A DNA stretch of 64,000 nt from Diplonema japonicum (GCA_964019335.1 OZ025735.1:186001-250000), one strand, 5' to 3'. Shown: positions 2,193-49,434, numbered from the stretch's first letter. Program-made: numbers and translations. Notes: generated from the sequence alone by a model not told the origin.

Positions 2193-2735
2193 AATAGCTA
2201 TTTACTGCCAACAAGTACTGACTTCACCGTTACCTCGAGGCAACGGTAAAGCATTACTTGGCGGTAGGTAAGTGGCTTTATTTCACGACACTTCTGAAAT
2301 CTACTTCACCACGAGGTTACAATTCAAGTTGTTTTCCCTCATTTTGTTGACTAAGTGCTGCCGCTGTCGCTGGCATTGCTACTGTCACCATCTCTAATCA
2401 AGCCTTCTTCTCATACCTGGCGCGGCCACTCGTTTCTCACTTTCTGCTGGAGCTTGGTAAGCTGACTAAATGAAGAAAAGTTGTAATTGGGAACAAGGCC
2501 TAGCCAAAAGTGGGCAAATTAGGAGGAAAAGGTAGTCCAACTTGGAACTAAACCCAGGCGAAAGTTGGCCAATTGAGCTGAACCTGGGGGAAAATTAGCA
2601 AACTGAGAGGAAAAAGCAGCCCCACTGGAACTGAACCGAGGCAAAAATTGGCCTACCGAGGCACATTATTTCACCGTGAAGTAATGATATTTAGCGTTGC
2701 CCTAGTGCGTGAAGTAATTTCAGAAGAGTGAAATA
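2193..2735 (+). mobile_element. Hairpin/internal-complement element E1 (non-autonomous, no TIR/TSD); same family as E4
   Basis: Highly similar to 48611-49350. Left hairpin about 2200-2270; 2277-2309 is the reverse complement of right end 2709-2737; palindrome 2664-2686. Confidence 0.85.
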
Positions 2736-3893
2736 AAAAAAAAAAAAGAAAAGAAAAAAGAAGAATGAATTTTGATGAAAGGCACTTGGTACCTTCTGGT
2801 GTCATATTTTCTTTTTTTCTCTTTTTTTTTTTTTTTGTTTAGACTTGCTTTTTCTACCTCGGTGGGTTCACTTCTTGTTCTTCTTCCTCCTCCGTTCCCC
2901 GCCATGCACTGCTCTTTTTGATGTGTCGTGAGAGTTCTTATTGCAAAAACAAGTAAGCCGCGGGAAAGAAAAAAAAATGAAAAGCTAGAAGGGAAAAAAA
3001 AAAAAAAAGACGAGCTTACAAATTTCAATAAAACCTCCTATATAAAAGAAAAAAAAAAAGATAAAGAAGAAAAGAAAGAAAAAGTTCAAATGAAAGGTGA
3101 GGATGCGACTCAGTAGGACAGAAGTCTGTGTCCCGTTTTATGTGAGTTTAAAAAAAAAGAAAAAAAAAAAAAAAGAAAGACGTTGTACTAAGCACCCCCG
3201 TCACCCCGGGTTTCTTTTTTTTTTTTTTTTTTTTTTTTAGAGACAAGGGAGACGTTTCAAAACAGGAACCTCCTTTATCTCATCTCTTTCTGTTCCTTCC
3301 CCCCCCCTCTTTTTTCCTTCTTTTTTCTTCCGATGAGGGGGGGGGGGGGGGGTCAACGTGGTGAAGTCATTTTCAGAGTGAAATAAGACCCACGGCTTTC
3401 GGCTTTCTTTAGAAGAAAGGAAAAAAAAAAAAAAAAAAAAAAAAAAGGGACACGCAGATTTAAACTCTTTTTATAGAGAAAGTAAAAATGAAAAAAAAAT
3501 CACGTTGTCCACCCCCCTCCCCCCCCCCCTATTTTCCTTTATTTTTAGGGGGGAAAAAAGGGAGAGAAACCAACGTTTTCAGTAACTTTTTTTTGGGGGT
3601 GCTTGGTAATGAGTCAGTAGCGACGCCACTTCACTGATTCGAATTGAGTTTTTGTGGCAAATCCACTACATCGGTAGGGATAGATTTCTCTTAATTTCGG
3701 CATTAAAAAAAAAGTTACTGAGCGTTGTTCTTTTTTCCCAAAAGGGGGGGGGAAAAAAAAAGTGCGCTCCATGTCAGCTTCCTCCCATGTCTCTTTTTTT
3801 TTTTTCTCATATTTTGTCATAATTTTTTTGACATGTGGGGACGTGTTCATGCCATCTCCCCCCCCGCCAGAAATAACATTGGTAGCCTTTTTT

Positions 3894-4994
3894 ATATGGG
3901 TCGATTTCAAAAAACCCCCCCCCAAAAGAAATGAGGCCAATTGACACTTTCGTTGCATCTTTGGGCATGCCGCCCCCTTTAAAAAAATTCTCCATATTTC
4001 CCGGCCCATATTAGGAAAGAACCCGGGTCAGAAATCGCTCAAGAGTGCTATTTTTGACCTATGAAAAATTTCAGTCTTAGGGGTAAAAATCGGGTTTTAG
4101 TGGTTTTGGTAAAGTCAGAGAGTATGCTTTCAATAGCAAGAAATAGCGGAACTCACTGCTAGAAGGTGGCTGAAATGATGTTGGAAACCTTCATTTCCTA
4201 GTCTTCTGCGGCTGAGATGTGCTGCTGCTGAGTGGGCGACCTCGTTTCTTTTTCATACCATTAGGCCTTCTACCGCATTTTGGGGGGGTTTTAAGAGGCT
4301 CATTCGTAGGTGTACTTGGTGCTTTGGGCTTGTCATGGGGTGTCGAGTATTTTTGTAATTTGGTTACTATTCTTTCTCGTTTTTCAAGTCCGGGAAGGCT
4401 ATCAAGAACGTCCTCATACTCACAAGATTCATAGACTGGGGGCCTTTTCTCTGCCCTGTCTGCATCGAGTTCTTTGATGATGTACTTTAGTTCTTTCTAG
4501 CTCGTGGACGCGCGCGTAGCAAATACACCCTCCGTGTGCTCCTGAGCTCATATGCACCTGTAAAATCCGGAAACTCAAGAATCTTCTTTTTGTACGGGCC
4601 AAAGACATCAGTAACTACATCGTTGCCACTGAGCTTCTCAAAAACCTCTGTGGCGGGTGTCCTGATCGCCGTGGTGTTCCCATTTACCCTTTCTCGGTCC
4701 GAATACCATTTTTTTTTACCCCTAGCTTCTCAACAGCAAGTTTAAAAGCATCCATTTTTGTCACCCCCTCTTTTACTGAATTTGTGCAAAGTGAAAAAAC
4801 CCATTTTTGTCCCTAGGACTGAATTTCTGGGTACTAGTAACACTCACTTTCCCATTTTCTGGGGTGTTTTCTTTCCTAACCTGGGCCGGGAAAGTTGTAG
4901 AATTTTTTTCTTTGGGAAAAAGTACTTAAAGAAATATTGAAAGTGTCAATTGGCCTCATTTTGGGGGGGGTTTTTTTTTGAAACGATGCCATAT
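3894..4994. mobile_element. Non-autonomous TIR DNA transposon (possibly Sola-like, ATAT-flanked)
   Basis: About 55-bp imperfect TIRs (...tttcaaaaaacccccccc...aaatgaggccaattgacactttc at about 3894-3951; inverse at about 4939-4994), a second subterminal IR pair, ATAT at both ends. Confidence 0.7.
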
Positions 4995-5128
4995 TTCAAA
5001 ACCACAATTTCACCACCCCCCCCCTTCTTTCCCTTTTTTTTAATTCCCAACTTTTCTACTCACAGAAAAAAAAAGAAAAAAAAAAAGGACTCCCTTCCCT
5101 CCCCCTTTTTCTCCCTGTATTCCAAACA

Positions 5129-7534
5129 ATGGAAACAGAAGGAGTGGATATGGAAGTGGTGACGCAAGTGGATGATGAAGGCTGGTTGGATATCGTAGTG
5201 CTGTCGGCAGTGGTGATAGCTATTATGTGGTGGAAGTGGAGCTCCATGGTGGAACAGAAGAGACGGGAAAAAGAGCTGGAGGAACGGGAAAATTTGCGAA
5301 AGAAAATGACGATCCCCACAAAAGAGGAGTGGAAACTAGACGAAATCGCACACTACACAGGCGGCCCGGAAGACGACCCGAGCCCCATCGTCTTTGCAGT
5401 TAAAGACAGCGTATTCAATGTCTGGAGGGGAAGAGGCTTCTATGGCTGCGAAGGCGCTTACCACTGCTTCGCGGGCAAAGATGCAACCATCATGATGGCT
5501 ATGGAACTTCTAGAACCACCCACAGAATTACAAAACGAAAGAGCATTGACTAGGACGGAGCTCTCCACTTTGGACGATTGGTTTGCTACCTTCGCTTGGA
5601 AGTACGACATAATAGGGAAACTGGCACCAGGCGAGGGTATCTGGGAAAGAGAGCCGCAAAAACGGAGAGATTGGGACTTGAAAAGTATGTATCTTACAAA
5701 AAAAAAAAAATAGCTATTCATTCCTGATTTCACGCGTGGGGTCCCCTTTTTGACGAGTGATTTTACTTCACTCGCTTCGCTCGTGAAGTAAAAAAACGAG
5801 TCAAAAAAGGGGACCCCACAAGTGAAATCATGCTCTGATTTTATTCAATACTGCATTTTATCAGGCCCCCCGGTTCAAAATGGGTTTTTTTCGATAGACC
5901 TGCGGTGCTTTTTTGGCCGATTCTTTGACCCTTTTTTTCAAAAAAAATAAAAATAGGGGTGAACGTTAATTGGGCCTCTCGTTGGCTTGAACACTTTTTT
6001 TTTTCTCCCTGAACGTTTGTGCTACTCCTCCAGAAACTCAGCCTCAGTAAGGTTCACATTCCGTCTGCTTGTCGGCATATCATGAAACCGTCTTATGACG
6101 CAACTGATGAAGTCTTCACTCGGAACATCTGCCCCCTCCGTGCTTATCACCAATAGACAGTTCAGTTTCTCAGGTTGTAGAGCAGGGAATTGCGGATAGC
6201 AGCAAGAAGAACTCTATCGATGCAGGGCTTAGGAAAGAGCCCTCTAGAGTCTCCCTGATGGTGTCGTGGTTGATGGGAGAAGAACTTGTCTTGAGCTTGA
6301 AAAGCTCAGCCACCACTAGACTGATGTCTTCTCGCACGGCCTTAACCCAGTTATCTGGCTTCAGCTGCCGCACCCTCTTCCACACTTTATCCTTTGCCTC
6401 TTTGCCAAGTTCTATGGAGAACTGATTGCCTAAGTGGTGAAGCAGCGGCTCGACCAACTGCTTAGCTATTTCGATTTCGGGCTTGTCCCCTGCATAGATT
6501 TTATGGTCAAGATCGAATAAACCGGCAGCTTGCAACTCCGGCTGCGGCGCTAACCGCTGCTTCACGTTGCCCATCAGAGCGCTGAATTCGTGGCACAGAC
6601 TGGATGCCGTGGAACTGAGTTGGACTCCGTGGGACACGCAAAAGTTCGTCCATGGGGGGTTCTCGACATGAGCTGCCGATTCAGCGAGGTTCATGATTGC
6701 TCCATGAAGCAACCCGTTCACAGAACCGAATGAGAGGGAACTCTTCTGCAGTTTATTATTCAGTGGGTGCAGGCAATGCAATGCGGACTAAAACCACACC
6801 CCGTGATTAATAAAAAGAGAAAGATTCCTCACAAGGGCAACCCCTGCCCCCTTATGGCCTACCGCAGGTACTAGAAATTCGCCGGTCCACGTAGACAGGC
6901 GGCGTTATCAAAAAGAATTGCTTAGACAGGCGATCGCCGGTCTATCCCCACCTTACCGGGGGTTTGGTATGATCAATTCAGCGAATTGATGTTGACGTTT
7001 ATGTAAACGTGATTCTGTGCACTGTTGAAGTAGTGGGCTGTGTCGAAGGGGCAGAGCTGAAGGGGGCGTTGCAGGGGGACTGCTGTGTTTGTTCAACAGT
7101 TGGCCGTGCTTTTCTATTGGGTTTGATCGAGTGGTAGGTGCAAAACCTCTCCCACTCCTTCCTGTAGGCCATTTTGCTTGCCGTTGGAAGCCATCACAGT
7201 TTAGGCTGATGCCCTTGGCTCGCTTCCCGGTCGCCTTCGGTTTTCTTCCCATTTTGCTAGAAATGACTGTGGGCGTGAAATAAAGTACCTGATTTTCACG
7301 CCCAGCAACGTTTGGCTTAAAAACATGAGGAAAAAATCAGATACTTTATTTCACGCCCGTGAAATAAAGTGAAACCTGATTTATATCTTCCGGCCTAAAT
7401 TCTTTAAGCTGCTCAGAATTAAATAAAAAAAAAAAGTTGCGCAATATGCCCCATCTGGCATCGCTGCAGCTGTAGTTGTAGCTGCATCGCTGAGCGTTAC
7501 GCATCACAGTGGGACTCCCCGGGAAGGGGAATGA
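5129..7534 (+). CDS. Membrane-associated cytochrome b5-like heme/steroid-binding protein (MAPR family); join(5129..5684,7437..7534)
   Basis: N-terminal TM; AVKDSVFNV..GRGFYG..GAYHCFAGKDAT..LDDW...KYDIIGKL motif. Donor GTATGT at 5685 and acceptor (A)nAG at 7436 give an in-frame hydrophobic tail (KIAQYAPSGIAAAVVVAASLSV...). Confidence 0.85.
5709..7425 (+). mobile_element. Hairpin/internal-complement element E2, inside the MAPR intron
   Basis: Starts TAGCTATT like E1/E4; about 105-nt hairpin 5726-5830; 5840-5853 complementary to right end 7414-7427; palindrome actttatttcac-gccc-gtgaaataaagt at 7343-7370. Confidence 0.8.
6120..6781 (-). pseudogene. Probable hAT-like transposase C-terminal remnant carried inside E2
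   Basis: AAGLFDL (cf. AxxLDP) and LLLSAIPCSTT*ETELS (cf. hATC P(A/C)SSxxxERxFS), with a stop inside the motif. Confidence 0.45.
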
Positions 7535-7553
7535 TCTGGTGATTAGTTTTTTT

Positions 7554-7598
<45 letters not shown>

Positions 7599-7671
7599 GA
7601 CGATATCCCCACCCCCCCATAGCCATCCACGTATCACATCACACAAAAGGTAAGAAAAAAAAATTAAAAGA

Positions 7672-8328
7672 ATGTCATCAGCAAAGTTCAGTGTGAACTG
7701 GTGGGAGAGGGCGTGGCTGGAAGGGGACACCGGCTGGAAGTTCGTGGAGGCAACGGAAACCCTGCCTTTCGACAAGAATCTCGATACTGCTGCTGAGATC
7801 TTGAAAGAAAACCCCTTGAAGAAGAACGGCCACGCCTTCGTCCCTCTCTGCGGTGACTCCAAGGTGGTCCCCTACCTCGCGATGAAGGGGATGAAGGTGA
7901 CATGTGTCGAAGGGTCTGAACTCGCTCTGAACGGACTGAGAGAAGCGATCGGCACAATCCCTGAAGAAGCCCAACAACAGATTACAGTGATAGAAGGCGA
8001 CCTGTTCAAGGCAGAGCTTCCCACTGAATCCGTTGACTTCATCTATGACAGAGGAAGCCTCGTTGCAATCGATCCTGCAATGAGGCAAGAGTACTTCAAC
8101 GTGATGCAGAAAGTAAGCAAGCCTGGAGCTACATGTTTTTTGGAAGTAATCCACAGGACTACAGACATCACAGAAGGCCCACCACACCACATCACACTTG
8201 ACATGGTGAAGGACCTGTACCAGGGGTGGTCTGTGGGCATGGAAGAAAACGCTGTCGAGAAAGCAGAGAAGACAATCACCACGGGGATGCCATTCGGGTT
8301 TCCTATCGTGGCCATGAAGAGACTTTAA
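7672..8328 (+). CDS. Thiopurine S-methyltransferase (TPMT) family SAM methyltransferase
   Basis: W..AW..GDTGW, FVPLCGDS, GDLF, IYDRGSLVAI and GPP motifs. Confidence 0.9.
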   Translation: MSSAKFSVNWWERAWLEGDTGWKFVEATETLPFDKNLDTAAEILKENPLKKNGHAFVPLCGDSKVVPYLAMKGMKVTCVEGSELALNGLREAIGTIPEEAQQQITVIEGDLFKAELPTESVDFIYDRGSLVAIDPAMRQEYFNVMQKVSKPGATCFLEVIHRTTDITEGPPHHITLDMVKDLYQGWSVGMEENAVEKAEKTITTGMPFGFPIVAMKRL

Positions 8329-8491
8329 TCCCTCTTTTTGAAAAAAAAAAAAAAAAAAACCCCAAACTCACAATGGTTCCTAAGCAATAAGTCATTGAGC
8401 TTATCCTTGAGGGGATCACCACAAGAAGAGAATTTTCGTGGTGTGTGAGGCGGGTATCTCTCTCTCTCTTTTTTTTTTTTTTTTTCTTTTG

Positions 8492-8531
8492 AGGCGTCCT
8501 GCCACATACCGCAGGTACCCTTAAATGTCTC
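8492..8531. repeat. 40-nt dispersed micro-repeat, copy 1
   Basis: aggcgtcctgccacataccgcaggtacccttaaatgtctc; identical at 53608 and 61880; flanked by T-tracts. Confidence 0.9.
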
Positions 8532-8729
8532 TTTTTCTTTTTTTTTTTTTCCCTTCTTTTTTACAAGAAAGCGTTAGCTTTCCGTATCCCCCTACAGACA
8601 CAAGTCGGGGGGGGACTATGGGCTTTTCCTTTTCGTCCATCTATCCCCTTATACTCCTTGCTTTTTTTTTTCTTCTTTTTTTCTTTTCCTTTCTTGGATT
8701 ACCGAAAGGAAAAGATTTCAAGATACAAA

Positions 8730-8838
8730 CACTACGATAGGGCAGCGGGGAGCCACCTCAAACATGGGAGCATCATAAGGTAGGCACGCCACCGCCCGCG
8801 GTGGTCCGCTGCTGACCCCTTCGTTTCCTATCATAGTG
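8730..8838. mobile_element. 109-bp CACTA/Transib-like MITE
   Basis: Termini cactacgatagg ... cctatcatagtg (11/12 inverted match), AA on both flanks. Confidence 0.55.
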
Positions 8839-8925
8839 AATTTCCTTTCTTTTTTCCTCCCCTCTTAAATCCTTTTTTGCCCCCTACCTCTGCAACGTCT
8901 TAACATTTAGAATGGAAAAAATAAA

Positions 8926-10263
8926 ATGTCCTTCCCACCCAGCGAACTGATACGCCTTGGCAGCTCACTGTTGGTGTCCGGGCCTTCCGGTGCGGGGAAG
9001 GCGTATCACATCAAACAAGCAGCTTCACAAAAAAAACTCAAATTCCGCGAGCTGGAACCGATAGACATCTACTCCTTAAAATTCGAGGGCGGGGAACACG
9101 GCCTTCGACCGTTCTTCGCAGATTCCGCAAACGGGAGCGACGGGTGCCTGCTGGTAAAACACGTAGAAAGGCTTCTTGAAGACACCGACCTGTGGGGCTC
9201 ATTCGAAGACCTCCTCCAAAACCCCCCAAGAAACTGGTGCGTGTGCTGCACCGCACGAAGCACGACGGACATACCCGGGTTTATACTGTCTAAGTTCTCG
9301 CACTGCATAGAATCCCCAACGCCTAGCCTCGCGCAGCGATCAGAGTTAATATCAAACATCACGAGAGGGAAACCGATGCACGCAGACGCGGAATGGATAG
9401 CTGGCAGGCTCGGTGGTGTACCGGAGTACGAGATCCATCAGACCTTGACCGGTTTGGACACAAAGGCGGATTTTATCAAAGCGTCGCGTTCCCGAATCTC
9501 TGTGATGGAAAAAACGGGTTTCGGTGGGGCCACGGTGGCGAAAACAGAGTGGAAAGACGTTAAAGGACACGAGACGGTGAAATCAGAACTGCAAACTGCA
9601 TTGTCTTTATTCAAATCAGAGAAATCCGTTGCAGCACTGGGGCTTGACGGTTGTAATGGAATCCTGCTGTACGGCCTGCCAGGAAACGGGAAGACAATGC
9701 TTGCCAAGGCGGTAGCTACCGAAATGGGGGGTACTTTCCTGTATGGCAGTATACCCGGGTTGGTGAAGGGGTTTGTTGGGGAGTCGGAGAGAATGGTGAG
9801 GGAGCTCTTCAGTGAAGCGGGTAAGAACGCGCCGTGCTGCCTTTTTTTGGATGAAATCCAAGCTGTGTTCGGGGCACGCGAGGCATCGGGGGACCATGAT
9901 TCCCGCATTGTTTCTACTTTGCTTACTTGTATCGATAATGTGCCTTCCAGCGTTCTTCTGCTGGCTGCCACCAACACTCCTCACCAGCTTGACTCTTCGC
10001 TCCTTGTACCTGGAAGGCTCGACATGCACATACATGTTACGCCCCCATCGCACTCCGACCGTTCTTGTTTTTTCGTTCACAATGGCGTCAGTGCCGGGTT
10101 GGCGGGGCAGCTCGCGTCGGATACCGAAAACTACTCGTACTCTGACCTCGCTGCTGTGATGGCGATCTCGAAGCACTGCCCGTCTTTGCAGGATGCGGTT
10201 CGTGTCACGCACCCGTCCGCCGACCCTGAAACACTGCGGGAACTTTGTAGTTGGAAAGCTTGA
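8926..10263 (+). CDS. Two-module AAA+ ATPase (CDC48/AFG2-like subfamily)
   Basis: Degenerate first module (GPSGAGKA); second module with GLPGNGKT Walker A, LFLDE Walker B and AATN...LD..L..PGRLD second region of homology. Confidence 0.88.
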   Translation: MSFPPSELIRLGSSLLVSGPSGAGKAYHIKQAASQKKLKFRELEPIDIYSLKFEGGEHGLRPFFADSANGSDGCLLVKHVERLLEDTDLWGSFEDLLQNPPRNWCVCCTARSTTDIPGFILSKFSHCIESPTPSLAQRSELISNITRGKPMHADAEWIAGRLGGVPEYEIHQTLTGLDTKADFIKASRSRISVMEKTGFGGATVAKTEWKDVKGHETVKSELQTALSLFKSEKSVAALGLDGCNGILLYGLPGNGKTMLAKAVATEMGGTFLYGSIPGLVKGFVGESERMVRELFSEAGKNAPCCLFLDEIQAVFGAREASGDHDSRIVSTLLTCIDNVPSSVLLLAATNTPHQLDSSLLVPGRLDMHIHVTPPSHSDRSCFFVHNGVSAGLAGQLASDTENYSYSDLAAVMAISKHCPSLQDAVRVTHPSADPETLRELCSWKA

Positions 10264-10363
10264 AAAAAAAGAGAAAAAAAAAGAGTTCGCGGGATTTTTT
10301 TTTTTTTTTAACACAACCCAGAGACAAGAATAACTGACCTTTAAAGGAAAGAAAAGAAAGAAA

Positions 10364-11152
10364 ATGAGCAAGCAGAACTGTCCGATGTGCAAGGGCCAGG
10401 GCAACTTCGACGTGTGGGGCCGGCCTTGTGCGGCCAACCACATGCACGCGAAGATGGCGTGCCCGTTGTGCCAAGGGGTGTGTTTTGTGATGGGGGACTA
10501 CAACGAGTGTGGGACGTGCAAGGGGAAGGGCGGGGTGAGCTCCTTCGGACACCCCTGCGTGAAGACCGACATGCACTTCACGAAGGACTGCCACATGTGC
10601 AACGGAGCAGGCTGGACGAAGGTAGCAGGTGGGTGCTACCCGCCAGTTCCTGGAATGCCGAATGCTGACTTCTCATCTGATTGGGTGAATGTGACGGTGA
10701 GGCCGAGCGAACCTAACCCGGTGCAACCTAACCCAGTGCCCCACAACCCTTACGTGCAGCCGGTGCCTCACAACCCGTATGTTCAGCCTGGTGGCCAGCC
10801 TGGGGGTGCTATGCCGCATAACCCGTATGCCCCGAACCCTAGCGCACCCCCGGCTATGCCTATGCCTGTACCTATGCCAGCACATAACCCGACCCGTGCT
10901 GTTCCCACCCTTCCAGTTGCCGGAAGCTGGCGCAATGCAGCTGATCTTCATGATGTCAGCACCATTACCCAAAACGGCGCCACCTTTACCACCAGTAACC
11001 CCAAGCATACCTGGTCCCCCAGCGAGGGCGTGCTCTCTGGTAATGCCCTCAGCTGGATGAGTGGGGGCCTCTCCCCCTTCACGGCCACAGTGAACCCAGA
11101 GCACAATTGCATTACCTTCTCCAACGGTGGCGTTTGGGTACGCATGACATGA
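10364..11152 (+). CDS. Cys-rich CxxCxGxG zinc-finger protein with Pro-rich PHNPY repeats
   Basis: CPMCKGQG, CPLCQGVC, CGTCKGKG, CHMCNGAG; three PHNPY repeats; beta-rich C-terminus. Confidence 0.75.
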   Translation: MSKQNCPMCKGQGNFDVWGRPCAANHMHAKMACPLCQGVCFVMGDYNECGTCKGKGGVSSFGHPCVKTDMHFTKDCHMCNGAGWTKVAGGCYPPVPGMPNADFSSDWVNVTVRPSEPNPVQPNPVPHNPYVQPVPHNPYVQPGGQPGGAMPHNPYAPNPSAPPAMPMPVPMPAHNPTRAVPTLPVAGSWRNAADLHDVSTITQNGATFTTSNPKHTWSPSEGVLSGNALSWMSGGLSPFTATVNPEHNCITFSNGGVWVRMT

Positions 11153-11698
11153 GGAGAGTGTTAACATTTTTTGTGTGGTGTGTCAATGAACTTGTACGTT
11201 TAGTTTTAACAGACTCAAAAAAAAAAAAAAAGAAAAAAAAGTGTTTTTTTTTTTTTTAAATTCCCCTTCAGATACAGATTTCATTCCCCTTTTTTTTATG
11301 GAGGAAATAATACTGGCCGCGAAATGGTGTTTGCAAATAACGTCTCTATTAGGTTGAAAAAGAAATTCAAAAAGAGTTTGTAACCTTTGCGCACAAACAA
11401 AAGAACAACTTTCAAAGAAGCTTTGAAACTTTTGAACCTATACCTCTTGCCGCCTACCCCCCCCCCCCCCCCCCCCCTCCCCTCTTTTTTTATCGTTACA
11501 TTTTGTACTGCAGAGTGAAATCCTTTTTCTTTTCTATTCTTTTCTTTTGAAAATACTTTTTTTTTTCGTTCAAAGAAACATGCATATTTAAACAAAAGTC
11601 ATTTGTAGCTTGCCACGAAAAACCTCCTCTTTCTCACTCAAAACAGTATTTCTTTTTTTTTTTTTTTTATTATTGAACAAAATAAAGTCACAGTACAG

Positions 11699-11733
<35 letters not shown>

Positions 11734-36653: not shown

Positions 36654-36698
<45 letters not shown>

Positions 36699-37216: not shown

Positions 37217-37249
<33 letters not shown>

Positions 37250-38832: not shown

Positions 38833-38869
<37 letters not shown>

Positions 38870-38910
38870 AAAGGAGAAAGGGAGAAGGGAAAAAAAAAAA
38901 AAAAAAAAAA

Positions 38911-40541
38911 ATGCCGAGAGTCAGGGGTGTGAAAGAAGCCCTTTGGAATGTGGGCACCTTCGTGATTGGCGGAAGCGTGGCATGGAAGATGGGGGGTGCC
39001 TTGGGTGACGCAGTGTTTGGGCAGGAATTGAAGGGACACTTTTTGGTGGTATGAATTTTTTTTTTTTTTTTGTTCCACACAATCCCGCACAGGACAGAGG
39101 AGACAGGTACACCAACGAGCACCCCATCTACAACTTTACCTATAACAAACCTGGGCATCCTGTACAAATGAGCCCAAACGATTGGATTCATTTTCCTTTG
39201 GAGCTCAAGAAACAGCACACAAAAGACTCTGTCCTCCTCCGCTTTCAGCTCCCTTCCGTCCACGGGCGCATGGGCGGCAATGTAGCCAGCTTCGTCCTTT
39301 TGCGTTATAAGGACACTGATGGAAAGTACGTCGTGCGCCCTTACACCCCCGTTTCAATGGATTGGGAGTTCGGGCATTTCGATTTGCTGGTGAAGAAGTA
39401 CCCTGACGGTAAGATGGGGAACCATCTCGATGGGCTGAAAATAGGAGACAGAATTGAAGTAAAGGGTGTGCTGCCGAAGCTGGAGGTGCAGGCGAACGAT
39501 TATGCGAAAATTGGGCTTATTGCAGGGGGCAGCGGTATTACTCCGTGCTGGCAGGTGTGGAGGGAGGGAAAAAAAAAGAAAAAAAAAAAAAAAAAGGTGA
39601 TGATGTACCTGGCTAAAATGGACACCAACAAGACGAATTGTTCACTTATTTACGCGAATCACACCCCAGATGATATCATGATGAAGAGGGTATGAGGGGG
39701 AAAAAAAAAAAGACTATTTATTAAATAAATCTTTTTCACGAGTAGTTGAATTTCACGAGCGAAGCGAGTGAAATTCAAAAAACGAATGAAAAAAAAAAAA
39801 ATTCCGAGTAAAAATCTGGCTGATTTTTATTTAATACGATATTTTATTTAATTTTTGTAAAGTTAAATGAGGAAATTTCGGACACTGTGAACCCTTCATG
39901 TTCACTTCTGCGAAATGTTCACACTGATGTCAAAACTAAGCCTGATTGCCTGAGAAGACGATGTCAAATTGACAGAATTCTGTAGGTTTTGTGTAATTTG
40001 TGTCGGCACTTGATCATCGCTCTTCAGAAACTGCTGGTTTTGTGCGGGGGCTTGATCAGGTCTGACTTCCAGCCAAAACAGCAGGTTCCTTCATCAACAA
40101 GGTATTGTGCAAAAGAACGCCTGTATGCATGGCCAGTGTAATTTTCGGCATTTGCCAGCCTCAGGTGTGATGCTTGGTGGCCCGGAAACGTGGTAAAGTG
40201 TGTTTATGCCTCTTTTGCCTCGGATGCCTGACTGTTTTTTGCCTCAGATACCTGGCTGTGGTTTGGGTTGGTTGGGTTGGGTTACGTCTCATATTTTGCG
40301 AGGCGATTAATGTATGTGTCGAGCGACGTTTGTAAAAGCGCAACATGCTGTAGCTCAGTGGCAGCCTCGAGGGGACTGCCCCGAATGTAATCAGCCAGGT
40401 CGGCTGTCCCAGGAAGGGGGAACGGAGCACCGAAGGGAAGGTTCAGCCCACGTGGTGGCCCTCTCGGTTACTCCAGACAAAAGACTGGACACACCCCACA
40501 CCCCACCCCCCACCCCCAGTTTCCCCCCAGTGGTTATTATT

Positions 40542-40576
<35 letters not shown>

Positions 40577-40850
40577 CAACATGCTGTAGCTCAGTGGTCA
40601 TGTCGTCGCACTCGTCTCCTGGAGACGCCAGATCAAATCCTGGACCCTGAACTTTTTTCGATAAAATCGGGGTCAAAAAAACGGTCCCTCGGGGCTTGAA
40701 CCCTCGACCCCTGAAACAGTGGCACTTTTTTAAGCCAAATTCGGCCTATTACTTTATTTTTATTCTTCACTTTATTTTTACTCGTGAACGATAAAGTGAT
40801 TTCTGATTTTTATGGCTCTTTAGGAATTTCCTCATGTAACTTTACAGAAT

Positions 40851-40884
<34 letters not shown>

Positions 40885-41158
40885 CAGTCGCTGAACAGCT
40901 TAGAGCGAAACCACACCAGAATGTCCATTTACCATACTGTGTCAAAAGCGGACTCTGAGTGGCGGGGCGGTCTCGGCCGTGTGAATGCGCAGATGATCAA
41001 GTCGAAGATGCCCGCCCCTGGCGAAGGGAAGATTTTGGTCTGCGGTCCCCCGGCAATGATGGAAGCAGTGTGCGGCAAAAAGGATCAGATGAAACAGGGC
41101 CCTCTTGGGGGAATGCTGAAAGACATGGGGTATTCTGAAGACGATGTGTTTAAATTCT

Positions 41159-41160
<2 letters not shown>
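38911..41160 (+). CDS. NADH-cytochrome b5 reductase (MCR1/CBR-like); join(38911..39048,39093..39554,39597..39689,40888..41160)
   Basis: RPYTPVS, LVKKYPDGKM, IAGGSGITP, LIYAN, VCGPPAM, GYSEDDVFKF; three GT-AG introns restore the frame. Confidence 0.93.
40362..40575 (+). mobile_element. Poly(A)-tailed retroposon (SINE or LINE 3' end) with 22-bp TSD
   Basis: gcaacatgctgtagctcagtgg duplicated at 40340-40361 and 40576-40597; A32 tail immediately before the second copy. Confidence 0.8.
40582..40650 (+). pseudogene. tRNA-derived sequence (A box plus degenerate B box) inside E3
   Basis: TAGCTCAGTGG A box and ccagatcaaatcctgg T-arm-like stem; no acceptor stem; an opposite-strand B-box-like ggttcaagcccc at about 40691-40702. 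Confidence 0.5.
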
Positions 41161-41193
<33 letters not shown>

Positions 41194-41578
41194 CTGTACA
41201 GTGTTTTTTTTTCCCTTTTTTTTCCCAGAGGGGGATCTAATATCCAGAAAAGAAAAAAAAAAAAGTGTTCCAGGATTTTTTTTATATTCCATTTCCCCCC
41301 TTTTTTTTTGTTTCCTCCAGACAACCACGAAAAAAAAAAAAAAAAAAGAATCCCCGTTCCCCAATCTTCTTTTTTTTCCCAGAAAAATCTATTTTCTTTT
41401 ATTGTATTATTCTAATGCTTTTCCCCCTCCACGTTAAGCTCGGAGAAGAAAACCAATAATACAAAAAAAAAAAAGAAAAAAGAAAAAAAAAAAACAACAT
41501 TAAAATTCAGGGCCAAAACTAATAATTATGTTCTGAGCTTTTTTCAAAAAACCCAAAAAAAAAAAAAAAAAAAAAAAA

Positions 41579-43537
41579 ATGAAATTATTGCACATTCTAA
41601 CCGTAGTGATAGTGGTGTCGTTCGGGATGACATTTTCCATAGGGGTGAGCGTCAACCGAATGTCAGCATGGGAGGCCTCAACCGCCGGAATCCCCCACAA
41701 CCGAGAAACCGTCATAACAAATGTTCAGCAAGTCGTCCGACAGATAGAACAAGCAGAAGCACAGGACAACACCAACGCCAACATCCGTAGAGCCCTCGAA
41801 GCCGCTGTGCATAAAATGGGCGCCGACGAGACCTACAAAAAAATCATCGAAAACCACAATTTCAAATGCCGAACCTCCATCACAGGAAGGCTCTGCATAT
41901 ACCCGTTCACATACGAAAACAGCAAGCTTAAGGGAAGCGTGATGGTTAACAACGTACGTTCCTGCCCTGTTGAGGTCAATCTTGAAAATTCCGAAGCCAT
42001 AACCTTCGAACCATGTGGAAACCTGCACCTTACTGACAGCCCCCCTGAAACAAAAGGCTCGTGCAAACATGGTAAATGCAATTGTAATGACGATGGGGGA
42101 ACGACTCTAATGTGTACTGACGAGAGGCTGTCATGCCCCGCAGCTTGCGACGCTCTGTATCAAAAACCACACGAGGGGTACTTCAACAAGATCATCGCAA
42201 CGACCATTGTATCAGGATGGCAAGCTTCGAAACCATCATCGATTTCAGATATCTCCTCTCTTCTCCGTCTTGAACCTCCATCATATCATTCCGTCTCCGA
42301 TCAGTTCCACGGTACTGGGATTGTAATAGCATCGGGTGGAACTCGTATGTTATCTGCTGTGGCAACTGCATTGTTCATCCGTTTGCAGTTGAAATCCACG
42401 CTTCCAATTGAAATATGGAGAACAGAGGGCGAGGGGGAGATTACCCAGGATATTATAGATATCTGCCAGCAGCATGATGTGTTTCATGTTTCGATCCCGA
42501 TGGACTTCGGTCCTGGAATATTCGGGTGGGAGGACCGTTGGCAGCAAGACCCGAAGCATGAGCTTCTCTCCTCGAAGGCCGTGTTTACAGCGTTGAAGCC
42601 TTACGTAATGCTTCTGTCTCATTTTGACACTGTGATTTTTTTCGACGATGACGCGATCCCTACCATCGACCCCGCGCACTTCACATCATTGCTAGAAAAC
42701 GGTATTTCCGCTGTTTTCTGGCGTGATTTATGGTCGCTTTACCCCGACGCATCCATATGGACCATTTTAAAATGGCCGGGAGAGAATCCTAAAACCGCTC
42801 CTGCACAAGATTCCGGAACTGTTGTTGTTTGCAAATCCTGCGACAACGGGAAAGGTTGGGAGGGTTTGTACAAAGCCGGTTACATGAACTTCCACCACTC
42901 CGTCTTCTACCCCTCCCTTTATCTCGGGTCTTTTAAAAACTGCAAGGGCGGCTGCACCGCGTTCGGTATCGGCGATAAAGATACTTTTCAAGCTTCTTGG
43001 ATATCAATTAACGCGAAATACTCGATGATGCCTGCATTGTCCCTTGTTGGTGCAAAGCGAGCGTCATGTGGGCCTGTCTTGGGGCAGCCTGGTCCTGACG
43101 GGTCTATCCTCGTACTCCACATGAACAGCAACAAGCTTTCGTATCGTGATTACAAAAAGAAATCCTGGGATAAATCTTACAAAAGATACGGACATTCGTT
43201 GCAACAGGTCATATCCCACACCAACCCTGACAATGCAAATATTGGTGACGGGAGGCACACACCTCAGATTAAATGGTCTGGTCTTCCTAGGTCGGGAGCG
43301 GCGAGGTGTCTAAGTTTTTTGAAGGGGCACCCCAACACGAAAACACCCCTGCGGGATAACGTCGGGACCCCGTGGGATATCGAGGAGGCTATCCATAAGG
43401 TGTTTGTCAATGTGTTTGAAACAAAGTGGGCGGATGCGTATTACGTAGCAGTTGCACCCCCTGAGACACCTACTCCACCGACCGAGCCTCCGAAGCCGAA
43501 GTTGAAGAGCTTGGAAGTTACACGTCAAGTGCCTTGA
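41579..43537 (+). CDS. Alpha-mannosyltransferase, GT71 (MNN2/MNN5-like)
   Basis: Signal anchor; GIVIASGG, LPIEIW, K....L.S.FD.V.F.DDD, FWRDLW, QDSG and GDKDTF motifs. Confidence 0.85.
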   Translation: MKLLHILTVVIVVSFGMTFSIGVSVNRMSAWEASTAGIPHNRETVITNVQQVVRQIEQAEAQDNTNANIRRALEAAVHKMGADETYKKIIENHNFKCRTSITGRLCIYPFTYENSKLKGSVMVNNVRSCPVEVNLENSEAITFEPCGNLHLTDSPPETKGSCKHGKCNCNDDGGTTLMCTDERLSCPAACDALYQKPHEGYFNKIIATTIVSGWQASKPSSISDISSLLRLEPPSYHSVSDQFHGTGIVIASGGTRMLSAVATALFIRLQLKSTLPIEIWRTEGEGEITQDIIDICQQHDVFHVSIPMDFGPGIFGWEDRWQQDPKHELLSSKAVFTALKPYVMLLSHFDTVIFFDDDAIPTIDPAHFTSLLENGISAVFWRDLWSLYPDASIWTILKWPGENPKTAPAQDSGTVVVCKSCDNGKGWEGLYKAGYMNFHHSVFYPSLYLGSFKNCKGGCTAFGIGDKDTFQASWISINAKYSMMPALSLVGAKRASCGPVLGQPGPDGSILVLHMNSNKLSYRDYKKKSWDKSYKRYGHSLQQVISHTNPDNANIGDGRHTPQIKWSGLPRSGAARCLSFLKGHPNTKTPLRDNVGTPWDIEEAIHKVFVNVFETKWADAYYVAVAPPETPTPPTEPPKPKLKSLEVTRQVP

Positions 43538-43574
43538 GGGCAGTTTCTTTTTTTTTTTTTTTTTTTTTTTTTTT

Positions 43575-43820
43575 GTGGATTTGACGAGTGAAACGTTTAA
43601 CGAGTCAAAACTGACCACAGTGAAATCATCAATCTTATATTCACAAATACAATATTTTATTTTTTAACGACAGCAAAAATTTGAGTGTGTGGGGGTCCTT
43701 TTCACTCCTGGGCCTAATCTTCTGTAGTAGCCCGAGCGTGGAAATAAAGTCGGGAGTGAAATAAAGTAAATTCTGATATTCACTCCCCCCACACGAAAAA
43801 TTGTGCTGGAGTTAAATAAA
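43575..43820 (+). mobile_element. Short, left-truncated hairpin/internal-complement element E5
   Basis: tttgacGAgt...acGAgtcaaa stem as in E2; about 43654-43695 complementary to right end about 43785-43821; gtgaaataaagt motif. Confidence 0.7.
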
Positions 43821-44090
43821 AAAAAAAGAAAGCGAAATATTAAAATTCACAAGGTGGGGGGGGAGGGGGGGGAGGTGGGAACATGGGAACAGTGTTGGTA
43901 TCCTCTTTTTTTTTACCTCTTCTTTTTTTCCCCCCCCCGTTTTATCGTGTTTCTTTAAATTATTCTTATTATTATTATCGTTTTCTTTTTACTCAAGAGA
44001 AAATCCTTTTTTCGGAGGCCGAATACAGAGAGTTTTTTTGCGCTGCGAAAAAAAGAATTGCAAAATGAACATTTTGCTCTTTTATTCTTC

Positions 44091-44121
<31 letters not shown>

Positions 44122-44147
44122 TTTTGCATGAACAAGAAAAACTATAT

Positions 44148-45049
44148 GAGCTCGTCCGGAAAAAAAATGTCAACAAATGACCCTCTTTTGCAACGGAAAA
44201 TCCTCGGAAGATTTCTAAGTACAAAAGTAGTCCGACACCACTTTGTGTGCAGAATTGCGGTCTGAGTGTGTTCACCATATTAGTCACGATGCGCGCCGTT
44301 TGTTTCATTTCTATAACGCACGTGCAAAAACATGCTTTTTAGAATGTTTTTTTTTGGCATTCGGAAATTGTAAATGACCCAGGCTCCATATTTCTTTTTG
44401 TTTTCTTCAATAAGAAGAAATGGACGCAGATGGAAAATCTGTGAAACTTAAGGGGTCATTTTGGGTAGTTTGGGCTCTTTATCACTATTAAAATGGGGTG
44501 GGCCCATTTTAGGCTAAAATCCCTTAAGGGCCCTTTAAAAGCAAACTTCTCAATTTTTAATTTGTCATGAGTAAGAAAAAAACCGACAAGCCTCAGCAGA
44601 TGGGTAGAGAATGCATATTTGGCCCAAAGATACCGATGTTGAGCAGGCAAGTGTGAAGAATGGGTTTTCAGGAAAATGGGCCTTTTAGGCCAATTCCCTT
44701 AGGAACCCCTGGAAAAAGCAAAAAATAGGGTGTAAAAAAACCGGTTTTTTGGGGGCTATGTAACGCCATATATTTTTCGCAAAGTACTTTTAACAGTAAC
44801 CCTGGGTTGTACCCGTGTAAAAAACATTTTTCGTCGTTTTCCTGACCTCTGTTTTTTGCTTCCCGGGGGGGCAGCCGGTTGCAAAGCCTGCCACCCTCAT
44901 GGCAAAACAAGCATCGCAATTGAAAGAACCATATATGTCATCTTCCTATGGTTGCATGCTGCCCTTTTTTTTTGCTCAAATCAATCAAAACAAGAAATTT
45001 TCGGAGGTGCCCAAAAAAGTGTTGGCATTTTTTTTTTTCGGACGAGCTC
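44148..45049. mobile_element. 902-bp non-autonomous Sola-like TIR element
   Basis: TIR gagctcgtccg(g)aaaaaaaatg.caac, GAG...CTC termini, ATAT TSD (44144-47 and 45050-53). Confidence 0.8.
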
Positions 45050-45332
45050 ATATATTGATAATGAATTGTTGATGCTAAAAAGAGTAGTGGTAACATTGTT
45101 GGGCTTATCCTTCTACAGGTTAACCCCCGGCTGTGCACAAACAATAATCAACCAACTCTTTTTTTTTTTTTTTTTTTTGCAGCGAGGTTGACAGGAAGGG
45201 GTGGATAGAATAACTACTTCCCTCATATCTCTGAGGGGGTTAGTTCTATTCTTTTTTTTTTGATCTCTGATAAACAGTAGACTTAAAAACTCTGTTGCTA
45301 GATAACTGCTGGGAGTTTCCCCCCTCTTCTTC

Positions 45333-45371
<39 letters not shown>

Positions 45372-46637
45372 CATTCTGGGACACAGGGCAAAAGTAAGAG
45401 ATTCTGAAACACTCTTTTTTTCAAAGCGAAAAAGAAGTCTTTTTTTTCTAATACAGCTCTTGGCGGAAAATGGGCCAAATTTTTCTTTTTTCTCTTTCTT
45501 CTTGTCCCCCTTCCCAAAAAAAAAATTAAAATAGAAGAACTGTGTTTTTTATTCTCGGTTGAAAAGGATTCCCCCCCCCCCCCCCCCCCCCAGGCTAAGT
45601 ACGTGCGTTTAGTGGCACACTTCCCCTGCGAAGGTAGAACGGCTCTTGTGCCCAGACAGGCGATGCTCCCCCCCCCCCCCCCCCATCATAGTAGTGAGTC
45701 GTAAGGGAGTTAAATAATTTCTTTTCATCAGCGAATTTTTATTTTAAAAAAATAACTATTCTTCACAATAACGCGTTTTTTGATTTTTATCTTTTTCTTT
45801 TTTCTTTCCTTCTTACGCATTGACCTTTGGGAGGGAGGAACAAAAATTTTAAAAAGAAGGGGGAAATAACCTGCACTACTATGTGTTTTCAGCTTATTTT
45901 CCTCTTTTTTTCTTTCTTTCCCCCCTTTTTTTTTGAGACACCTTACCCGTTCTGTAGAAGATACTAACCCCCCCCTCTTTTTTCGTTTTGGCTTTGTTTT
46001 TTTTTTTTCTCTCTTTTTTAAAAAAATCTTTTTATTCCTAAAGAATCTTATTGGAAAAAAAAAAATCAAAATTCCTTCTTCTTCTTCTTCTTGTTATCCG
46101 GAACTTTAAGAATTATCCTTTTTTTTAAGTTCATTTCCTTAATTTCGTTTTTTTTTTTTTTTTTTTTCCCTTAGATTTTTTTCTTTTTTCCCTTTGATTT
46201 TTTTTTCTTCATTTCTTTGTGTTAAGATAAGGGAAGGAAAAGGGTGTTTTTTTGTTTTTTTTTTTTGTTCTCCTTTTGGGACACACAAAAAACAAAAAGA
46301 AAACAAAAAAAGCATTATTCCCATGCCACCCATTGCTAGTAGACCGCAAAAAAGAAGAAAACGAACAAAAAGGAAAAAATAAAATTGTCAGTCATAGTGG
46401 GCTTGAGGCCATTCACCCCTCCCTTAGGAATTCTTTCAAGAACTCTATTCTTCGACTTCTCTTGGGGAAAAAAAAAGTGTGGCCGGTGCTGCTCTGTGAA
46501 AACTGAGATGTGAGCGGAGGGTGAAAAAAAAAAGAAATCGACGAAAGAAAAAAAAAATACTGAAAAAGAAGAAGAAAAAGAACAACAAATTCAAACCCCT
46601 GGAACACCATGTGAGGAAGATGGGGTGCGTAATAATA

Positions 46638-46677
<40 letters not shown>

Positions 46678-47094
46678 AAAGCTGAAAAACTTTTTTCAAC
46701 GGGGGGGGGGGTGAGAAAACCATGTATAAATCGGAAATTTCTGTTATATTCCTTTTTAAAAAAAAAAAAAACCCCTTTTTTTATTCCCGCTGGGGTGTGC
46801 AGGTTATTCTTTTTTTTTAAATTTATTTATTTTTTTATTTATGTGGTCGGTTATTCACCTCCCTCCAATCGTGAAATCATTTCTAAACTGCGTGGGCGCC
46901 GAATCTCGGTTACCCGGGACGCCCCGGTTGGGGTTGAGCTGTACACCGCACGCAGAAGAAGCTACAACTCGGCCGAGGAGCGCCTCCTGTAATCAAGTAG
47001 ACAATTATTGTGCAGGGCACCGGCCTCCTTTAACTCTTATATTCTTTTTTTTTTTCCTTTTTCTTTAAAAAAGAGATGAAAAAGAAAAAAGAAG

Positions 47095-47095
<1 letters not shown>

Positions 47096-47142
<47 letters not shown>
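47096..47142. repeat. (GA)n microsatellite
   Basis: Perfect dinucleotide run of about 23 units. Confidence 0.95.
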
Positions 47143-47145
<3 letters not shown>

Positions 47146-47285
47146 ACCGACTGGATTATTTTCTTTTTTCCCCGCGTTTTTATCTTTATTTATTCCCCCC
47201 ACCCCACCCCACCCCATTTGTTTTATATTTCCACCCCCCCAAAAAAAACCCACTCTAAAAAAAAACCCCCCCAGGGAAAAAAAAA

Positions 47286-48500
47286 ATGAACTTTAAATTT
47301 TCAATAATAATATTAATCCTGAGCGTGTCGCATGAGGCCTCCTGCGGGGCATGCAAGGAGGGTGTTCTCGAAAAGGCAGATTCGCCCACCGCAACTGAAG
47401 CACAGCTGATCGCTGCCGTGAAGTGCTTCTCAGAAGAGGATAAAAATCTTGACAAAGGCCTGGAATACCTCCGAAGAGCCGCGGAAACCGAAGGCGTCCT
47501 GGGACCGAGACTGTACGGAAACTACCTCCACGGTGTGAACGACAGCTCCTTCATGGAATGGTGGGTAAAAGGGATGGAAAGGGGCGACGCGCAATGCGAG
47601 AGCAACATAGGAATGGCCTACCTCCACGGCCACGGCGTAGACGCCGATCTGGAAAAAGCACACAAACACATCAAAACCGCAGCTGACCACGGTGACACTA
47701 CAGCTCAATACAACATGGGCCTGCTTCTTCTAGAAGGCCTACCGTCAATCGGAATATTCAAGGACGAGAAAAACGGAGCCCTCCACCTCGCAAAGGCCGC
47801 GAAAGCAGGCCACACCTCCGCCATGATGGAACTGGCGGTCATGACAAAACGTAACGGCCGTTATACCAAAAAATCCTTGAAATGGCTTGAACCAGCTCAC
47901 AAAGCAGGTAACACCGAAGCTTCACACATCCTCGGGTATATGTACAAAACAGGTGTTCAAGTAGATGTTGATGAAGAAAAAGCATTTTCCTACTATATAA
48001 AAGCAGCTAGAGGCGGGCATGCGGGTTCGCAATACGAGGTTGGTCTTATGTATTTTTACGATACTGGTGTGGAAGAGGACTACACCCTTGGTAGGTACTG
48101 GATGGAAAAGGCTGCCCGGCAGGAACACCCCAACGCGATGCACAATTTCGGGTCTATTTTGCTGAAGGACGACGATCCGAAAAAAGCACTCCTTTCGCAG
48201 AAACAGCGGGCGAAGCAACAGAAGGAAGACGAACAGTTAGCCCTTTCAATGTACGCTAGCGCCGCGTCAAAGGGCGTTCTTGAATCGGTGTACATTCTTG
48301 GGTACCTGCACTACAAAGAGCTGTACGGGCTCGAGAAGAACCATACTCTAACCTCCAAGTACTGGTCCGAGGCTGCCAGGGGAGGGCATGTGAAGTCTCT
48401 GAATGCGTTGAGGAAGATGGCCGAGGATGAAAACCACCCGGAGGCAATTTACCAACTAGGCGTTCTTAATGAAGTCGGTATGTGGTGGATTGAGGGGAGG

Positions 48501-48534
<34 letters not shown>

Positions 48535-49434
48535 GTCGAGCACATCCCCCAAGACGAAGACCTTGCCAAGAAACTATTCCGGGAAGCAGCTGATTTGGTA
48601 TGTCAAGATTTATAGCTATTTACTGCCAACAAGTAATGACTTTACCGTTACCTCGAGGTTCCGCATTTTACCGTCGAGGGCCCGCAGGGCCCGAGATGGT
48701 AAAATGCGGAACCGAGAGGTCGGTAAAGCATTACTTGGCGGTAGGTAAGTGGTTTTATTTCACGACACTCTGAAATTACTTCACCACGAGGGGCACAACA
48801 GGGTGACAAGGGGTACAACAAGAGAGGGGTTACAAAGGTTACAATACAAGTTGTTTTCCCTCCTTTTGTTGACTAAGAGCTGCCGCTGTCGCTGGCATTG
48901 CCACTGTCACCATCTCTAATCAGGCCTTCCCATACCTGGCGCGGCCGCTGGCTCCTTTTTTTCTGCTGCTTCGGTATTTTGAAGTCATTTGGGGAGCTTG
49001 GGTAAGCTGACTAAGTTACCCTTACCCACAGAAGAGTTACCCCCAGAAACTGGGAACAAGGCCTAGCCAAAAGTGGGCAAATTGGGAGGAAAAAGTAGTC
49101 CAACTTGGAACTGAGCCGAGGCAAAAGTTGGCCAATTGAGCTGAACCTGGGGGGAAATAGCAAACTGAGAGGAAAAAGTAGCCCCACTGGGAACCGAACC
49201 GAGGCAAAAATTGGCCTACCGAGGCATATTATTTAACGGAAACCCCCTATTACTTCACGGAAAACAGGCCATTATTTCACCGTGAAGTAATGAGATTTAG
49301 CGTGAAGTAATGGGCCCCCTAGTGCGTGAAGTAATTTCTGAAGAGTGAAAAAAAAAAAAAAAAAAAAATGATTGGTAACACAGGGTTCCGAAGCTGCGAG
49401 AAGTAAGCTCGGTGAGCTCGGTGAAGAACTTTAG
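47286..49434 (+). CDS. Secretory-pathway SEL1-repeat protein; join(47286..48477,48533..48597,49384..49434)
   Basis: Signal peptide and multiple A..G...AQY.LG SLR repeats; spliced end AADL|GSEAARSKLGELGEEL* completes the last repeat and gives a KDEL-like EEL terminus. Confidence 0.88.
48611..49350 (+). mobile_element. Hairpin/internal-complement element E4, inside intron 2 of the SEL1 gene
   Basis: Longer sibling of E1; about 130-nt hairpin with gggccc-GCA-gggccc apex (48678-48692); internal complement of the right end; palindrome 49270-49292. Confidence 0.88.

Follow-up and report, generated by a model that had tools for sequence, protein, structure and literature searches.

Probable Crypton-class elements of Diplonema japonicum with a terminal hairpin adjoining an internal complement of the opposite end

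The window analyzed here is a stretch of 64,000 nucleotides (nt) from Diplonema japonicum (GCA_964019335.1, OZ025735.1:186001-250000), with positions counted from its first letter. It consists of eukaryotic DNA with A or T runs spaced every few hundred bases and contains five short elements, E1 to E5, all located on the + strand within 47 kb. An earlier reading of the sequence alone (below, the original prediction) had described them as non-autonomous mobile elements of one orientation, lacking terminal inverted repeats (TIRs), whose internal segment can splint their own two ends together. Their mobile, non-autonomous nature is supported, the single orientation is confirmed for five out of five, and no TIR is present in E1-E5. 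If the window belongs to a one-directional gene cluster, the common strand may simply follow that of its A runs. Since recombinase-only elements with the same ends are found elsewhere in the genome (assembly of 62.5 Mb, 132 contigs), E1-E5 are very probably non-autonomous, dead, or decayed members of a large superfamily of very small Crypton-class transposons, an assignment that relies on shared features and on homologues of the enzyme. In the following, a and a' denote the arms of the left-terminus hairpin, b the right terminus, and b' the internal complement of b. Six families are defined: F1 (E1, E4, and L064), F2 (L049), F3 (L047), F4 (the type of E2, with L041 and L042), F5 (E3), and F7 (the type of E5, with the L007 copy).

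The two F1 members of the window, E1 and E4, align end to end, as originally predicted; their identity is ~76%. E1 (2194..2735, + strand) is a non-autonomous copy from an old subfamily, ~76% identical to the young copies. It starts with ATA|GCTATTTACTGCC and ends with GAGTGAAATA, after which an A run follows. The left terminal hairpin of E1, formed by arms a and a' (2197..2277, + strand), has a fold z-score of −3.9 versus shuffles, and the internal segment b' (2279..2316, + strand) pairs with the right terminus b (2701..2735) at 32/38 positions. The subterminal palindrome TTATTTCAC-C-GTGAAGTAA occupies positions 2666..2684 of the + strand, with a further GTGAAGTAA at 2709. E4 (48612..49352, + strand) is a young copy, its identity to 27 other copies having a median of 97.8% and a maximum of 99.7%. 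The left terminal hairpin of this copy (48615..48750, + strand; z-score −12.4 versus shuffles) is of the long form with an inner hairpin. Segment b' (48755..48793, + strand) pairs with the right terminus (49316-49350), and stretches 48766-48793 and 49316-49347 match at 27/32 positions. The right subterminal array together with the terminus (49272..49350, + strand) includes a palindrome at 49272-49290 and GTGAAGTAA at 49282, 49302, and 49326, while the right junction, GTGA|AAAA, is without the usual T. As for the flanks of E4, TGATTTGGTA lies 14 nt upstream of the element and TGATTGGTA directly after the A20 run (48576-48611 and 49371-49379, respectively). In view of this flank repeat the copy could have been retroposed; the match falls within the range of control flank pairs.

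E2 (5710..7425, + strand) is an F4 copy broken up by a foreign transposon, the norm of the family being ~0.65 kb. Its left hairpin (5725-5830, + strand; z-score −8.6 versus shuffles) and its right end (...CAGAATTAAATA, + strand) are intact, and the subterminal palindrome is located at 7346-7367. Thus, the predicted TTATTTCAC/GTGAA(A/G)TAA palindrome is present in E1, E2, and E4. The internal complement of E2 does not exceed chance (10/12, score 14), because the segment was lost to the insertion of a TIR transposon (5862-6962) and a deletion. F4 copies L041 and L042 are intact and keep the internal segment, with scores of 34-35. The inserted DNA transposon (5862..6962, + strand, 1.1 kb), the right TIR tip of which is deleted, is unrelated to the hairpin element. 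Its TIR reads CAGGGCCCCCGG...CCGGGGGCCCTG, and many copies exist in the genome, where it is accompanied by 6-7-bp target duplications (CTTTAAC at L033 and CCTAAGT at L037). Two open reading frames (ORFs) within E2, of 203 amino acids (6170-6781, − strand) and 99 amino acids, were considered as recombinase candidates and rejected: neither has a Pfam match, and both belong to the nested transposon.

E3 (39712..40857, + strand) is an F5 copy with slightly mutated termini and at least 40 genome copies at 90-96% identity; copies of its family and further copies of the E5 family were judged from match tables. The tip hairpin (39746-39778, + strand) folds weakly (z-score −2.7 versus shuffles), and segment b' (39846..39877, + strand) pairs with the right terminus (40825-40855) at 29/32 positions (alignment E 2e-6). 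The body of E3 is interrupted by a poly(A) retroposon of 214 bp (40362..40575, + strand), which is foreign to the hairpin element and flanked by a perfect 22-bp target duplication (40340-40361 and 40576-40597). The E3 sequence duplicated around this retroposon looks tRNA-like by eye. ARAGORN and Rfam searches report no tRNA or Rfam match, this segment included. E5 (43575..43822, + strand) is a relic of F7 of 246 bp, the family being ~0.8 kb long: the left terminus and the hairpin tip are missing, and ~0.5 kb of the body is deleted. No real hairpin is formed in E5 (fold z-score +0.5 versus shuffles). Its segment b' (43657-43694, + strand) still pairs with the right terminus (43785-43822) at 29/38 positions.

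The internal complementarity, the central claim of the original prediction, thus stands for E1, E3, E4, and E5 and fails for E2, while the left hairpins stand for E1, E2, and E4, weakly for E3, and fail for E5. In the four elements that retain the complementarity, the last 35-45 nt are complementary to the segment directly after the hairpin, with scores of 30-47 (shuffles have a mean of ~14, a standard deviation of ~2, and a maximum of at most 28). Joining the right end to the left one indeed recreates the reverse complement of one continuous internal stretch. This splint claim is correct because its left-end half is the 3' arm of the hairpin, the 5' arm of which starts near the terminus.

Beyond the window, the order a - loop - a' - b' - body - b is observed in all six families. 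The reverse complement of every right terminus was scored against the first 320 nt of each family. Own-family comparisons yield 30-68, cross-family ones 11-26, and shuffles ~14 (standard deviation ~2, maximum 28). Terminal sequences are wholly different between families, and each internal segment tracks its own terminus. Co-variation of b and b' is also seen within F7, in which E5 and the L007 copy have CCCCACAC and CCCACCCAC, respectively, at both places. When the right and left ends are joined in silico, a single long hairpin runs across the joint, with a minimum free energy of −24 to −90 kcal/mol. The same design occurs in metagenome contigs L070 and L071, the recombinase of which is only ~30% identical: a 189-nt hairpin adjoins a segment of 32 nt with 93.8% complementarity to the opposite end. 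All six families have two inverted imperfect copies of a site that are predicted to pair into a hairpin, with one arm split by integration.

Smaller motifs recur within this layout. Right subterminal regions hold 3 or 4 direct copies and 1 inverted copy of a family-specific motif (GTGAAGTAATG in F1 and GTTAAATAATG in F2), which is present in the hairpin stem too. The hairpin tips of F4, F5, and F7 carry a mini-hairpin motif of the GCGAAGC type in either orientation, and CGAG boxes recur in all families as well as in the metagenome relatives. The hairpin itself varies among copies. It has forms of 88 nt and 148 nt that differ by a precise deletion of the tip, its inner 70 nt are exactly inverted (flip/flop) in 1/31 F1 copies, and in some copies, such as L068 (about 2360), the whole left hairpin is precisely deleted. 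According to these tip and whole-hairpin deletions and the tip inversion, the palindrome is structurally unstable.

The ends are sharp and can be written as ...A-run ATA|[G/A]CTATTT ... GTGAAATA|A-run, with a single orientation relative to the A strand. About 30 F1 copies have identical start and end bases (...A-rich ATA|GCTATTTACTGCC ... GAAGAGTGA|AATA A-run). The left end of this family (33 nt) occurs 249 times in the genome (control: 0), and the family size is ~250 copies. Among 63 left ends from all families, T is found at position −2 in 55/63, and positions −3 to −8 are 71-95% A, the lowest value belonging to position −5 with T in 13/63. The flanks contain 68% A versus 11% T, and insertion is therefore orientation-specific relative to the A strand. 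ATA or AATA is present at both junctions in ~85% of copies; the short (A)ATA repeat is thus general at both ends rather than restricted to E1 and E2, as had been supposed. A longer target duplication is not detected: flank pairs have a mean score of 9.2, compared with 8.7 for mismatched pairs. What the original prediction named as grounds for its own rejection is likewise not seen, as the ends are sharp in ~30 copies, the internal segment and the terminus co-vary, and no outer TIR or target duplication exists.

A genome-wide pattern search found 24 tandem sites, at which an F1 or F2 right end is followed by an F1 or F2 left end within 20 nt. A single shared AATA is seen at 0/24 of these junctions, and the form GTGAAATA-ATA-[G/A]CT at 17/24, the remainder having extra A's between the ends. 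These counts argue against a 4-bp duplication and fit one defined exchange point. Some tandems join different families and are therefore insertions beside a resident end, not replication dimers. Judging from the tandem junctions, the terminal motifs are probably carried by the element and not supplied by the target. Both T-containing motifs are also found within otherwise pure A runs, which favours termini of the form ATA[G/A]CT...GTGAAATA that enter at one defined point, duplicate nothing, and have resident ...AAATA ends as their preferred targets. One T is missing on the left in L003, L024, and L064 and on the right in E4. Comparison of L010 with L039, a single diverged paralogue, shows an A run at the insertion point; beyond the A run the paralogue is too diverged to serve as an empty site.

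No enzyme for these elements is encoded in the window, as originally stated: tblastn with two recombinases reports nothing at E<=1. The long copies with a tyrosine recombinase that the original prediction suggested looking for are present in the genome, and their ends are identical or matching. A search with PF00589 (Phage_integrase) gives 31 matches, with E between 2.5e-9 and 6e-12 for full-length relatives. The autonomous elements are 1.35-1.7 kb long and have the tyrosine recombinase, encoded on the minus strand, as their sole long ORF; no reverse transcriptase, RNase H, methyltransferase, or other transposase is found in them. Three recombinase lineages are distinguished, each within elements with matching family-specific ends. 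F2 elements (L049 type, ~1.68 kb) encode on the − strand a recombinase of 367 amino acids from the first Met (range 367-440), and five of its copies are ~96% identical with open frames. F3 elements (L047 type, ~1.35 kb) also carry the recombinase and are decayed. Finally, in L064 (1.6 kb) the ends are exactly those of E1 and E4, whereas the recombinase gene is broken; E1 and E4 are therefore miniature derivatives of the L064 type.

Across 16 homologues, R142, H249, R252, and W275 are invariant, and K169 and Y284 are conserved in at least 90%, which makes up the R-K-H-R-W-Y set. According to the AlphaFold model (predicted local distance difference test, pLDDT, of 78), the predicted fold is Cre-like: the best matches are to Cre (template modelling score, TM, 0.6-0.69), followed by XerH, integron integrase, XerA, and Tn1549 Int. 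A word-based protein search returned no homologues, whereas the full HMMER search succeeded, with 1565 homologues; the named ones are eukaryotic (insects), and others come from metagenomes. The closest homologues are 33-40% identical and reside on contigs of 1.3-2.0 kb. Clusters of look-alike proteins are eukaryotic, including proteins of the DUF3504 type and ALOG+integrase proteins. The genome also contains a second tyrosine recombinase of ~544 amino acids (L050, L051, and L052, on G000 C74, C114, and C25, respectively). According to phmmer, it is unrelated to the hairpin-element enzymes, and its surroundings are GC-rich, with long open frames that overlap; L050-L052 possibly represent another element class.

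Cryptons (Goodwin et al. 2003) are the tyrosine-recombinase DNA transposons of eukaryotes. By definition, they have a recombinase only, no TIRs, and a short motif at both termini that resembles the target (PMC3212892; Kojima & Jurka 2011). The elements described here show these features: a tyrosine recombinase alone, neither TIRs nor long direct repeats, site-selective insertion, and a terminal motif repeated in the flank or target, which is (A)ATA here and CACCG/CAYCG or TATGG in Cryptons. Another common trait is a copy number that rises despite conservative chemistry. In an active Crypton of Chlamydomonas (CryptonF-1_cRei), the target resembles the terminal motif and excision is clean, yet copies are gained by an unexplained "complex mode" (PMC9977147). 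Compared with Cryptons, the elements reported here are much smaller (1.35-1.7 kb), have sharply defined ends and subterminal motif arrays, possess a terminal hairpin together with an internal complement of the other end, insert into A runs in one orientation, and form large families (F1, ~250 copies) resembling miniature inverted-repeat transposable elements. No such end architecture is described in the Crypton accounts consulted (PMC3212892, PMC13465315, PMC9977147), and a full-text search returned nothing closer; diplonemid genome papers (PMC10161547, PMC12621601) report neither such ends nor Cryptons in diplonemids. Among the analogies named in the original prediction, the one to Cryptons holds, while those to Helentron/DINE-1 (no Rep found, in a search with silent controls, and ends of another type) and DIRS (no reverse transcriptase) are not supported.

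Taken as a whole, the best explanation combines Crypton-class identity, the shared layout, and working on a folded substrate, and we give it a probability of roughly 0.7. Under this explanation, the recombinase would act in trans on the short copies. In the excised circle the right end would be joined to the left one, so that b+a and a'+b' would form the two arms of a long, short-looped imperfect palindrome. The novelty would lie in an attachment region that, in the presumed circle, makes up one arm of this palindrome. Integration would open that arm between b and a, and because of this opening an inserted copy would look able to splint its own ends. The target is an A run, the A's of which are always on the top strand of the element, and the copies are bordered by ATA to the left and AATA to the right. 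The palindrome may be used in folded form, as a single-strand hairpin or a cruciform, which we regard as falling a little short of even odds. The recombinase would then bind the b/b' and a/a' duplexes and exchange one strand at GTGAAATA^ATA; the partner would be an A run or, as the preferred choice, a resident element's ...AAATA end. As for CTXphi attP(+) and integron attC, the process would be finished by replication. The core and the target are unlike (ATAGCTA versus an A run) and the junction has a single register, which together fit the exchange of one strand.

Until now such a layout has been known from bacterial elements, which integrate as folded single strands. In CTXphi, attP1 and attP2 are inverted, ~90 nt apart, and pair within the single-stranded genome as a forked hairpin. 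A single strand takes part in the exchange, the completion of integration being left to replication, and the outcome is one divided site copy and one that stays undivided at one end (PMC3089051). The elements of D. japonicum resemble CTXphi and attC in having two inverted imperfect site copies with a short spacer that can pair into a hairpin of ~100-200 nt, with poorer pairing at the core. As in CTXphi, the core is unlike the target save for a few bases, which fits one-strand exchange, and after integration one arm is split and the other stays whole beside one end, corresponding to a-loop-a'b'...b. In contrast, CTXphi is bacterial, relies on host XerCD, and produces single strands by its own rolling-circle protein, whereas the present elements are eukaryotic, have their own recombinase, and have a folding that is predicted from sequence.

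Several observations weigh against the folded-substrate explanation. Mobilization of F1 would depend on an assumed cross-action of the F2 enzyme, as no intact recombinase gene of the F1 lineage was found in the genome (L064, L065, and L068 are broken). The G.T wobble pairs are 12 versus 12 between strands and both strands fold equally well; with this neutral outcome, no particular folded single strand is indicated. No replication or strand-displacing protein that could make single strands is encoded by the elements. The loss of a T at one junction is not reciprocal, which makes the exact crossover register ambiguous. Finally, no circle junction, excision event, or empty site is seen in the public-run data, which are assembled contigs that break at the repeat. 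The fully specified version, i.e., a eukaryotic superfamily with a self-folded hairpin or cruciform attachment site whose ends are joined on the internal complement and which integrates by one-strand exchange and replication, is accordingly offered as a tentative proposal with somewhat less than an even chance of being correct.

The classical double-stranded reading ranks close behind, though it is itself rather doubtful. Under it, the same elements would move as ordinary Crypton circles by two strand exchanges, and the internal copy would never pair with the ends. That inverted copy would instead be an accessory, architectural, or regulatory site, or the remnant of an ancestral inverted duplication whose copies gene conversion has kept similar. 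Cryptons have indeed been modelled as double-stranded circles, with clean excisions documented (PMC3212892, PMC9977147), and both the absence of strand bias among the wobble pairs and the absence of an encoded single-strand-producing enzyme agree with this. CGAG and CACTCGC boxes, common across families, suggest that the protein reads sequence, not shape. The fold matches, moreover, include integrases of the Tn1549 type, which tolerate unlike overlap regions. Tn916 and Tn1549 are similar to the present elements in that they use tyrosine recombinases and A/T-rich targets and do not need an identical overlap region, but they are bacterial and large, with variable coupling sequences taken from the donor flank, whereas the junction spacer here is constant (AATA+ATA in 17/24 tandem junctions). 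The double-stranded reading leaves unaccounted for that the hairpin abuts b' with a stem continuous across the joint, which is kept in six unalignable families and in relatives with 30% protein identity, even though the sequences differ. The unlike ATAGCTA core and A-run target would hamper two-strand exchange with branch migration, and the GCGAAGC-type mini-hairpin motifs at the hairpin tips, together with the flip/flop variants, are also at odds with it.

A DIRS-like origin is improbable. In this case, a reverse transcriptase provided in trans would use the internal complementary region to restore both ends and link them, after which the recombinase would insert the circle. DIRS1 is defined by the idea of an internal segment that pairs with the joined termini (PMC13465315); the present elements have such a segment and also have in common with DIRS1 a tyrosine recombinase as integrase and a presumed circular intermediate, and the genome offers many retroelements along with the second recombinase type (L050-L052). 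The likeness, however, is one of layout only. The 1.35-1.7-kb elements have the recombinase as their only long ORF and lack the reverse transcriptase, RNase H, methyltransferase, and long inverted terminal repeats of DIRS1; the strand ending in the A run is the antisense strand of the recombinase gene; and the internal segment is placed directly beside the terminal hairpin.

Even less probable is that the elements resemble short interspersed elements (SINEs), i.e., are poly(A) transcripts put in by the machinery of long interspersed elements (LINEs), with the A runs being the tail and an A-rich duplication. LINEs are abundant in the genome, an A run follows every copy, both flanking A runs are often long (L003, L018), and E4 has its possible 9-10-nt direct repeat around the 14-nt leader and the A20 run. 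On the other side, target duplication does not rise above chance (9.2 versus 8.7, the E4 repeat being within the control range), the 5' ends are exact in every copy, and 17/24 tandem junctions are exact with no residual tail. A SINE-like nature was the first guess and was dropped on account of this negative duplication test and of the matching elements that carry a recombinase gene.

Helitrons carry a Rep/helicase gene, have 5'-TC...CTRR-3' termini, and insert between A and T. Rolling-circle or single-strand HUH transposons (of the Helitron, Helentron, or IS200/IS605 kind) would suit the absence of a TIR and of a clear duplication, the hairpins near an end, and the single defined junction point, but they are the least probable source, given that no Helitron Rep domain (PF14214) is found in the genome by a search whose control genomes are silent too, that the ends ATA[G/A]CT...GTGAAATA break the end rule, and that each of three recombinase lineages is found in elements whose family-specific ends match.

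Among the classes of eukaryotic DNA transposons, none is less well understood than Cryptons, and their ends have been called hard to define. The copy gain seen when their activity was first observed is not accounted for by the simple circle model of cut-and-paste movement. The superfamily supplies exact ends and hundreds of young copies, as well as recombinase-only elements of 1.35-1.7 kb, one lineage of which has an open frame. A concrete prediction follows from the conserved architecture: both pairings, b'/b and a/a', should be indispensable. If the folded-substrate explanation is true, recombination on folded DNA would not be confined to bacteria, the elements would represent the eukaryotic equivalent of the CTXphi and integron systems, and a replicative mode would also explain copy gain in Cryptons. 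The tiny recombinase with its sites could be of interest as a tool. Because the families are located in A runs between genes, they need annotation in diplonemid genomics. As for their occurrence in public data, pieces of the F1 element (48630-49310) that are 97-100% identical occur in a run labelled as a different organism, and a coral metagenome holds a relative of this window region, including the flank to the right of E4.

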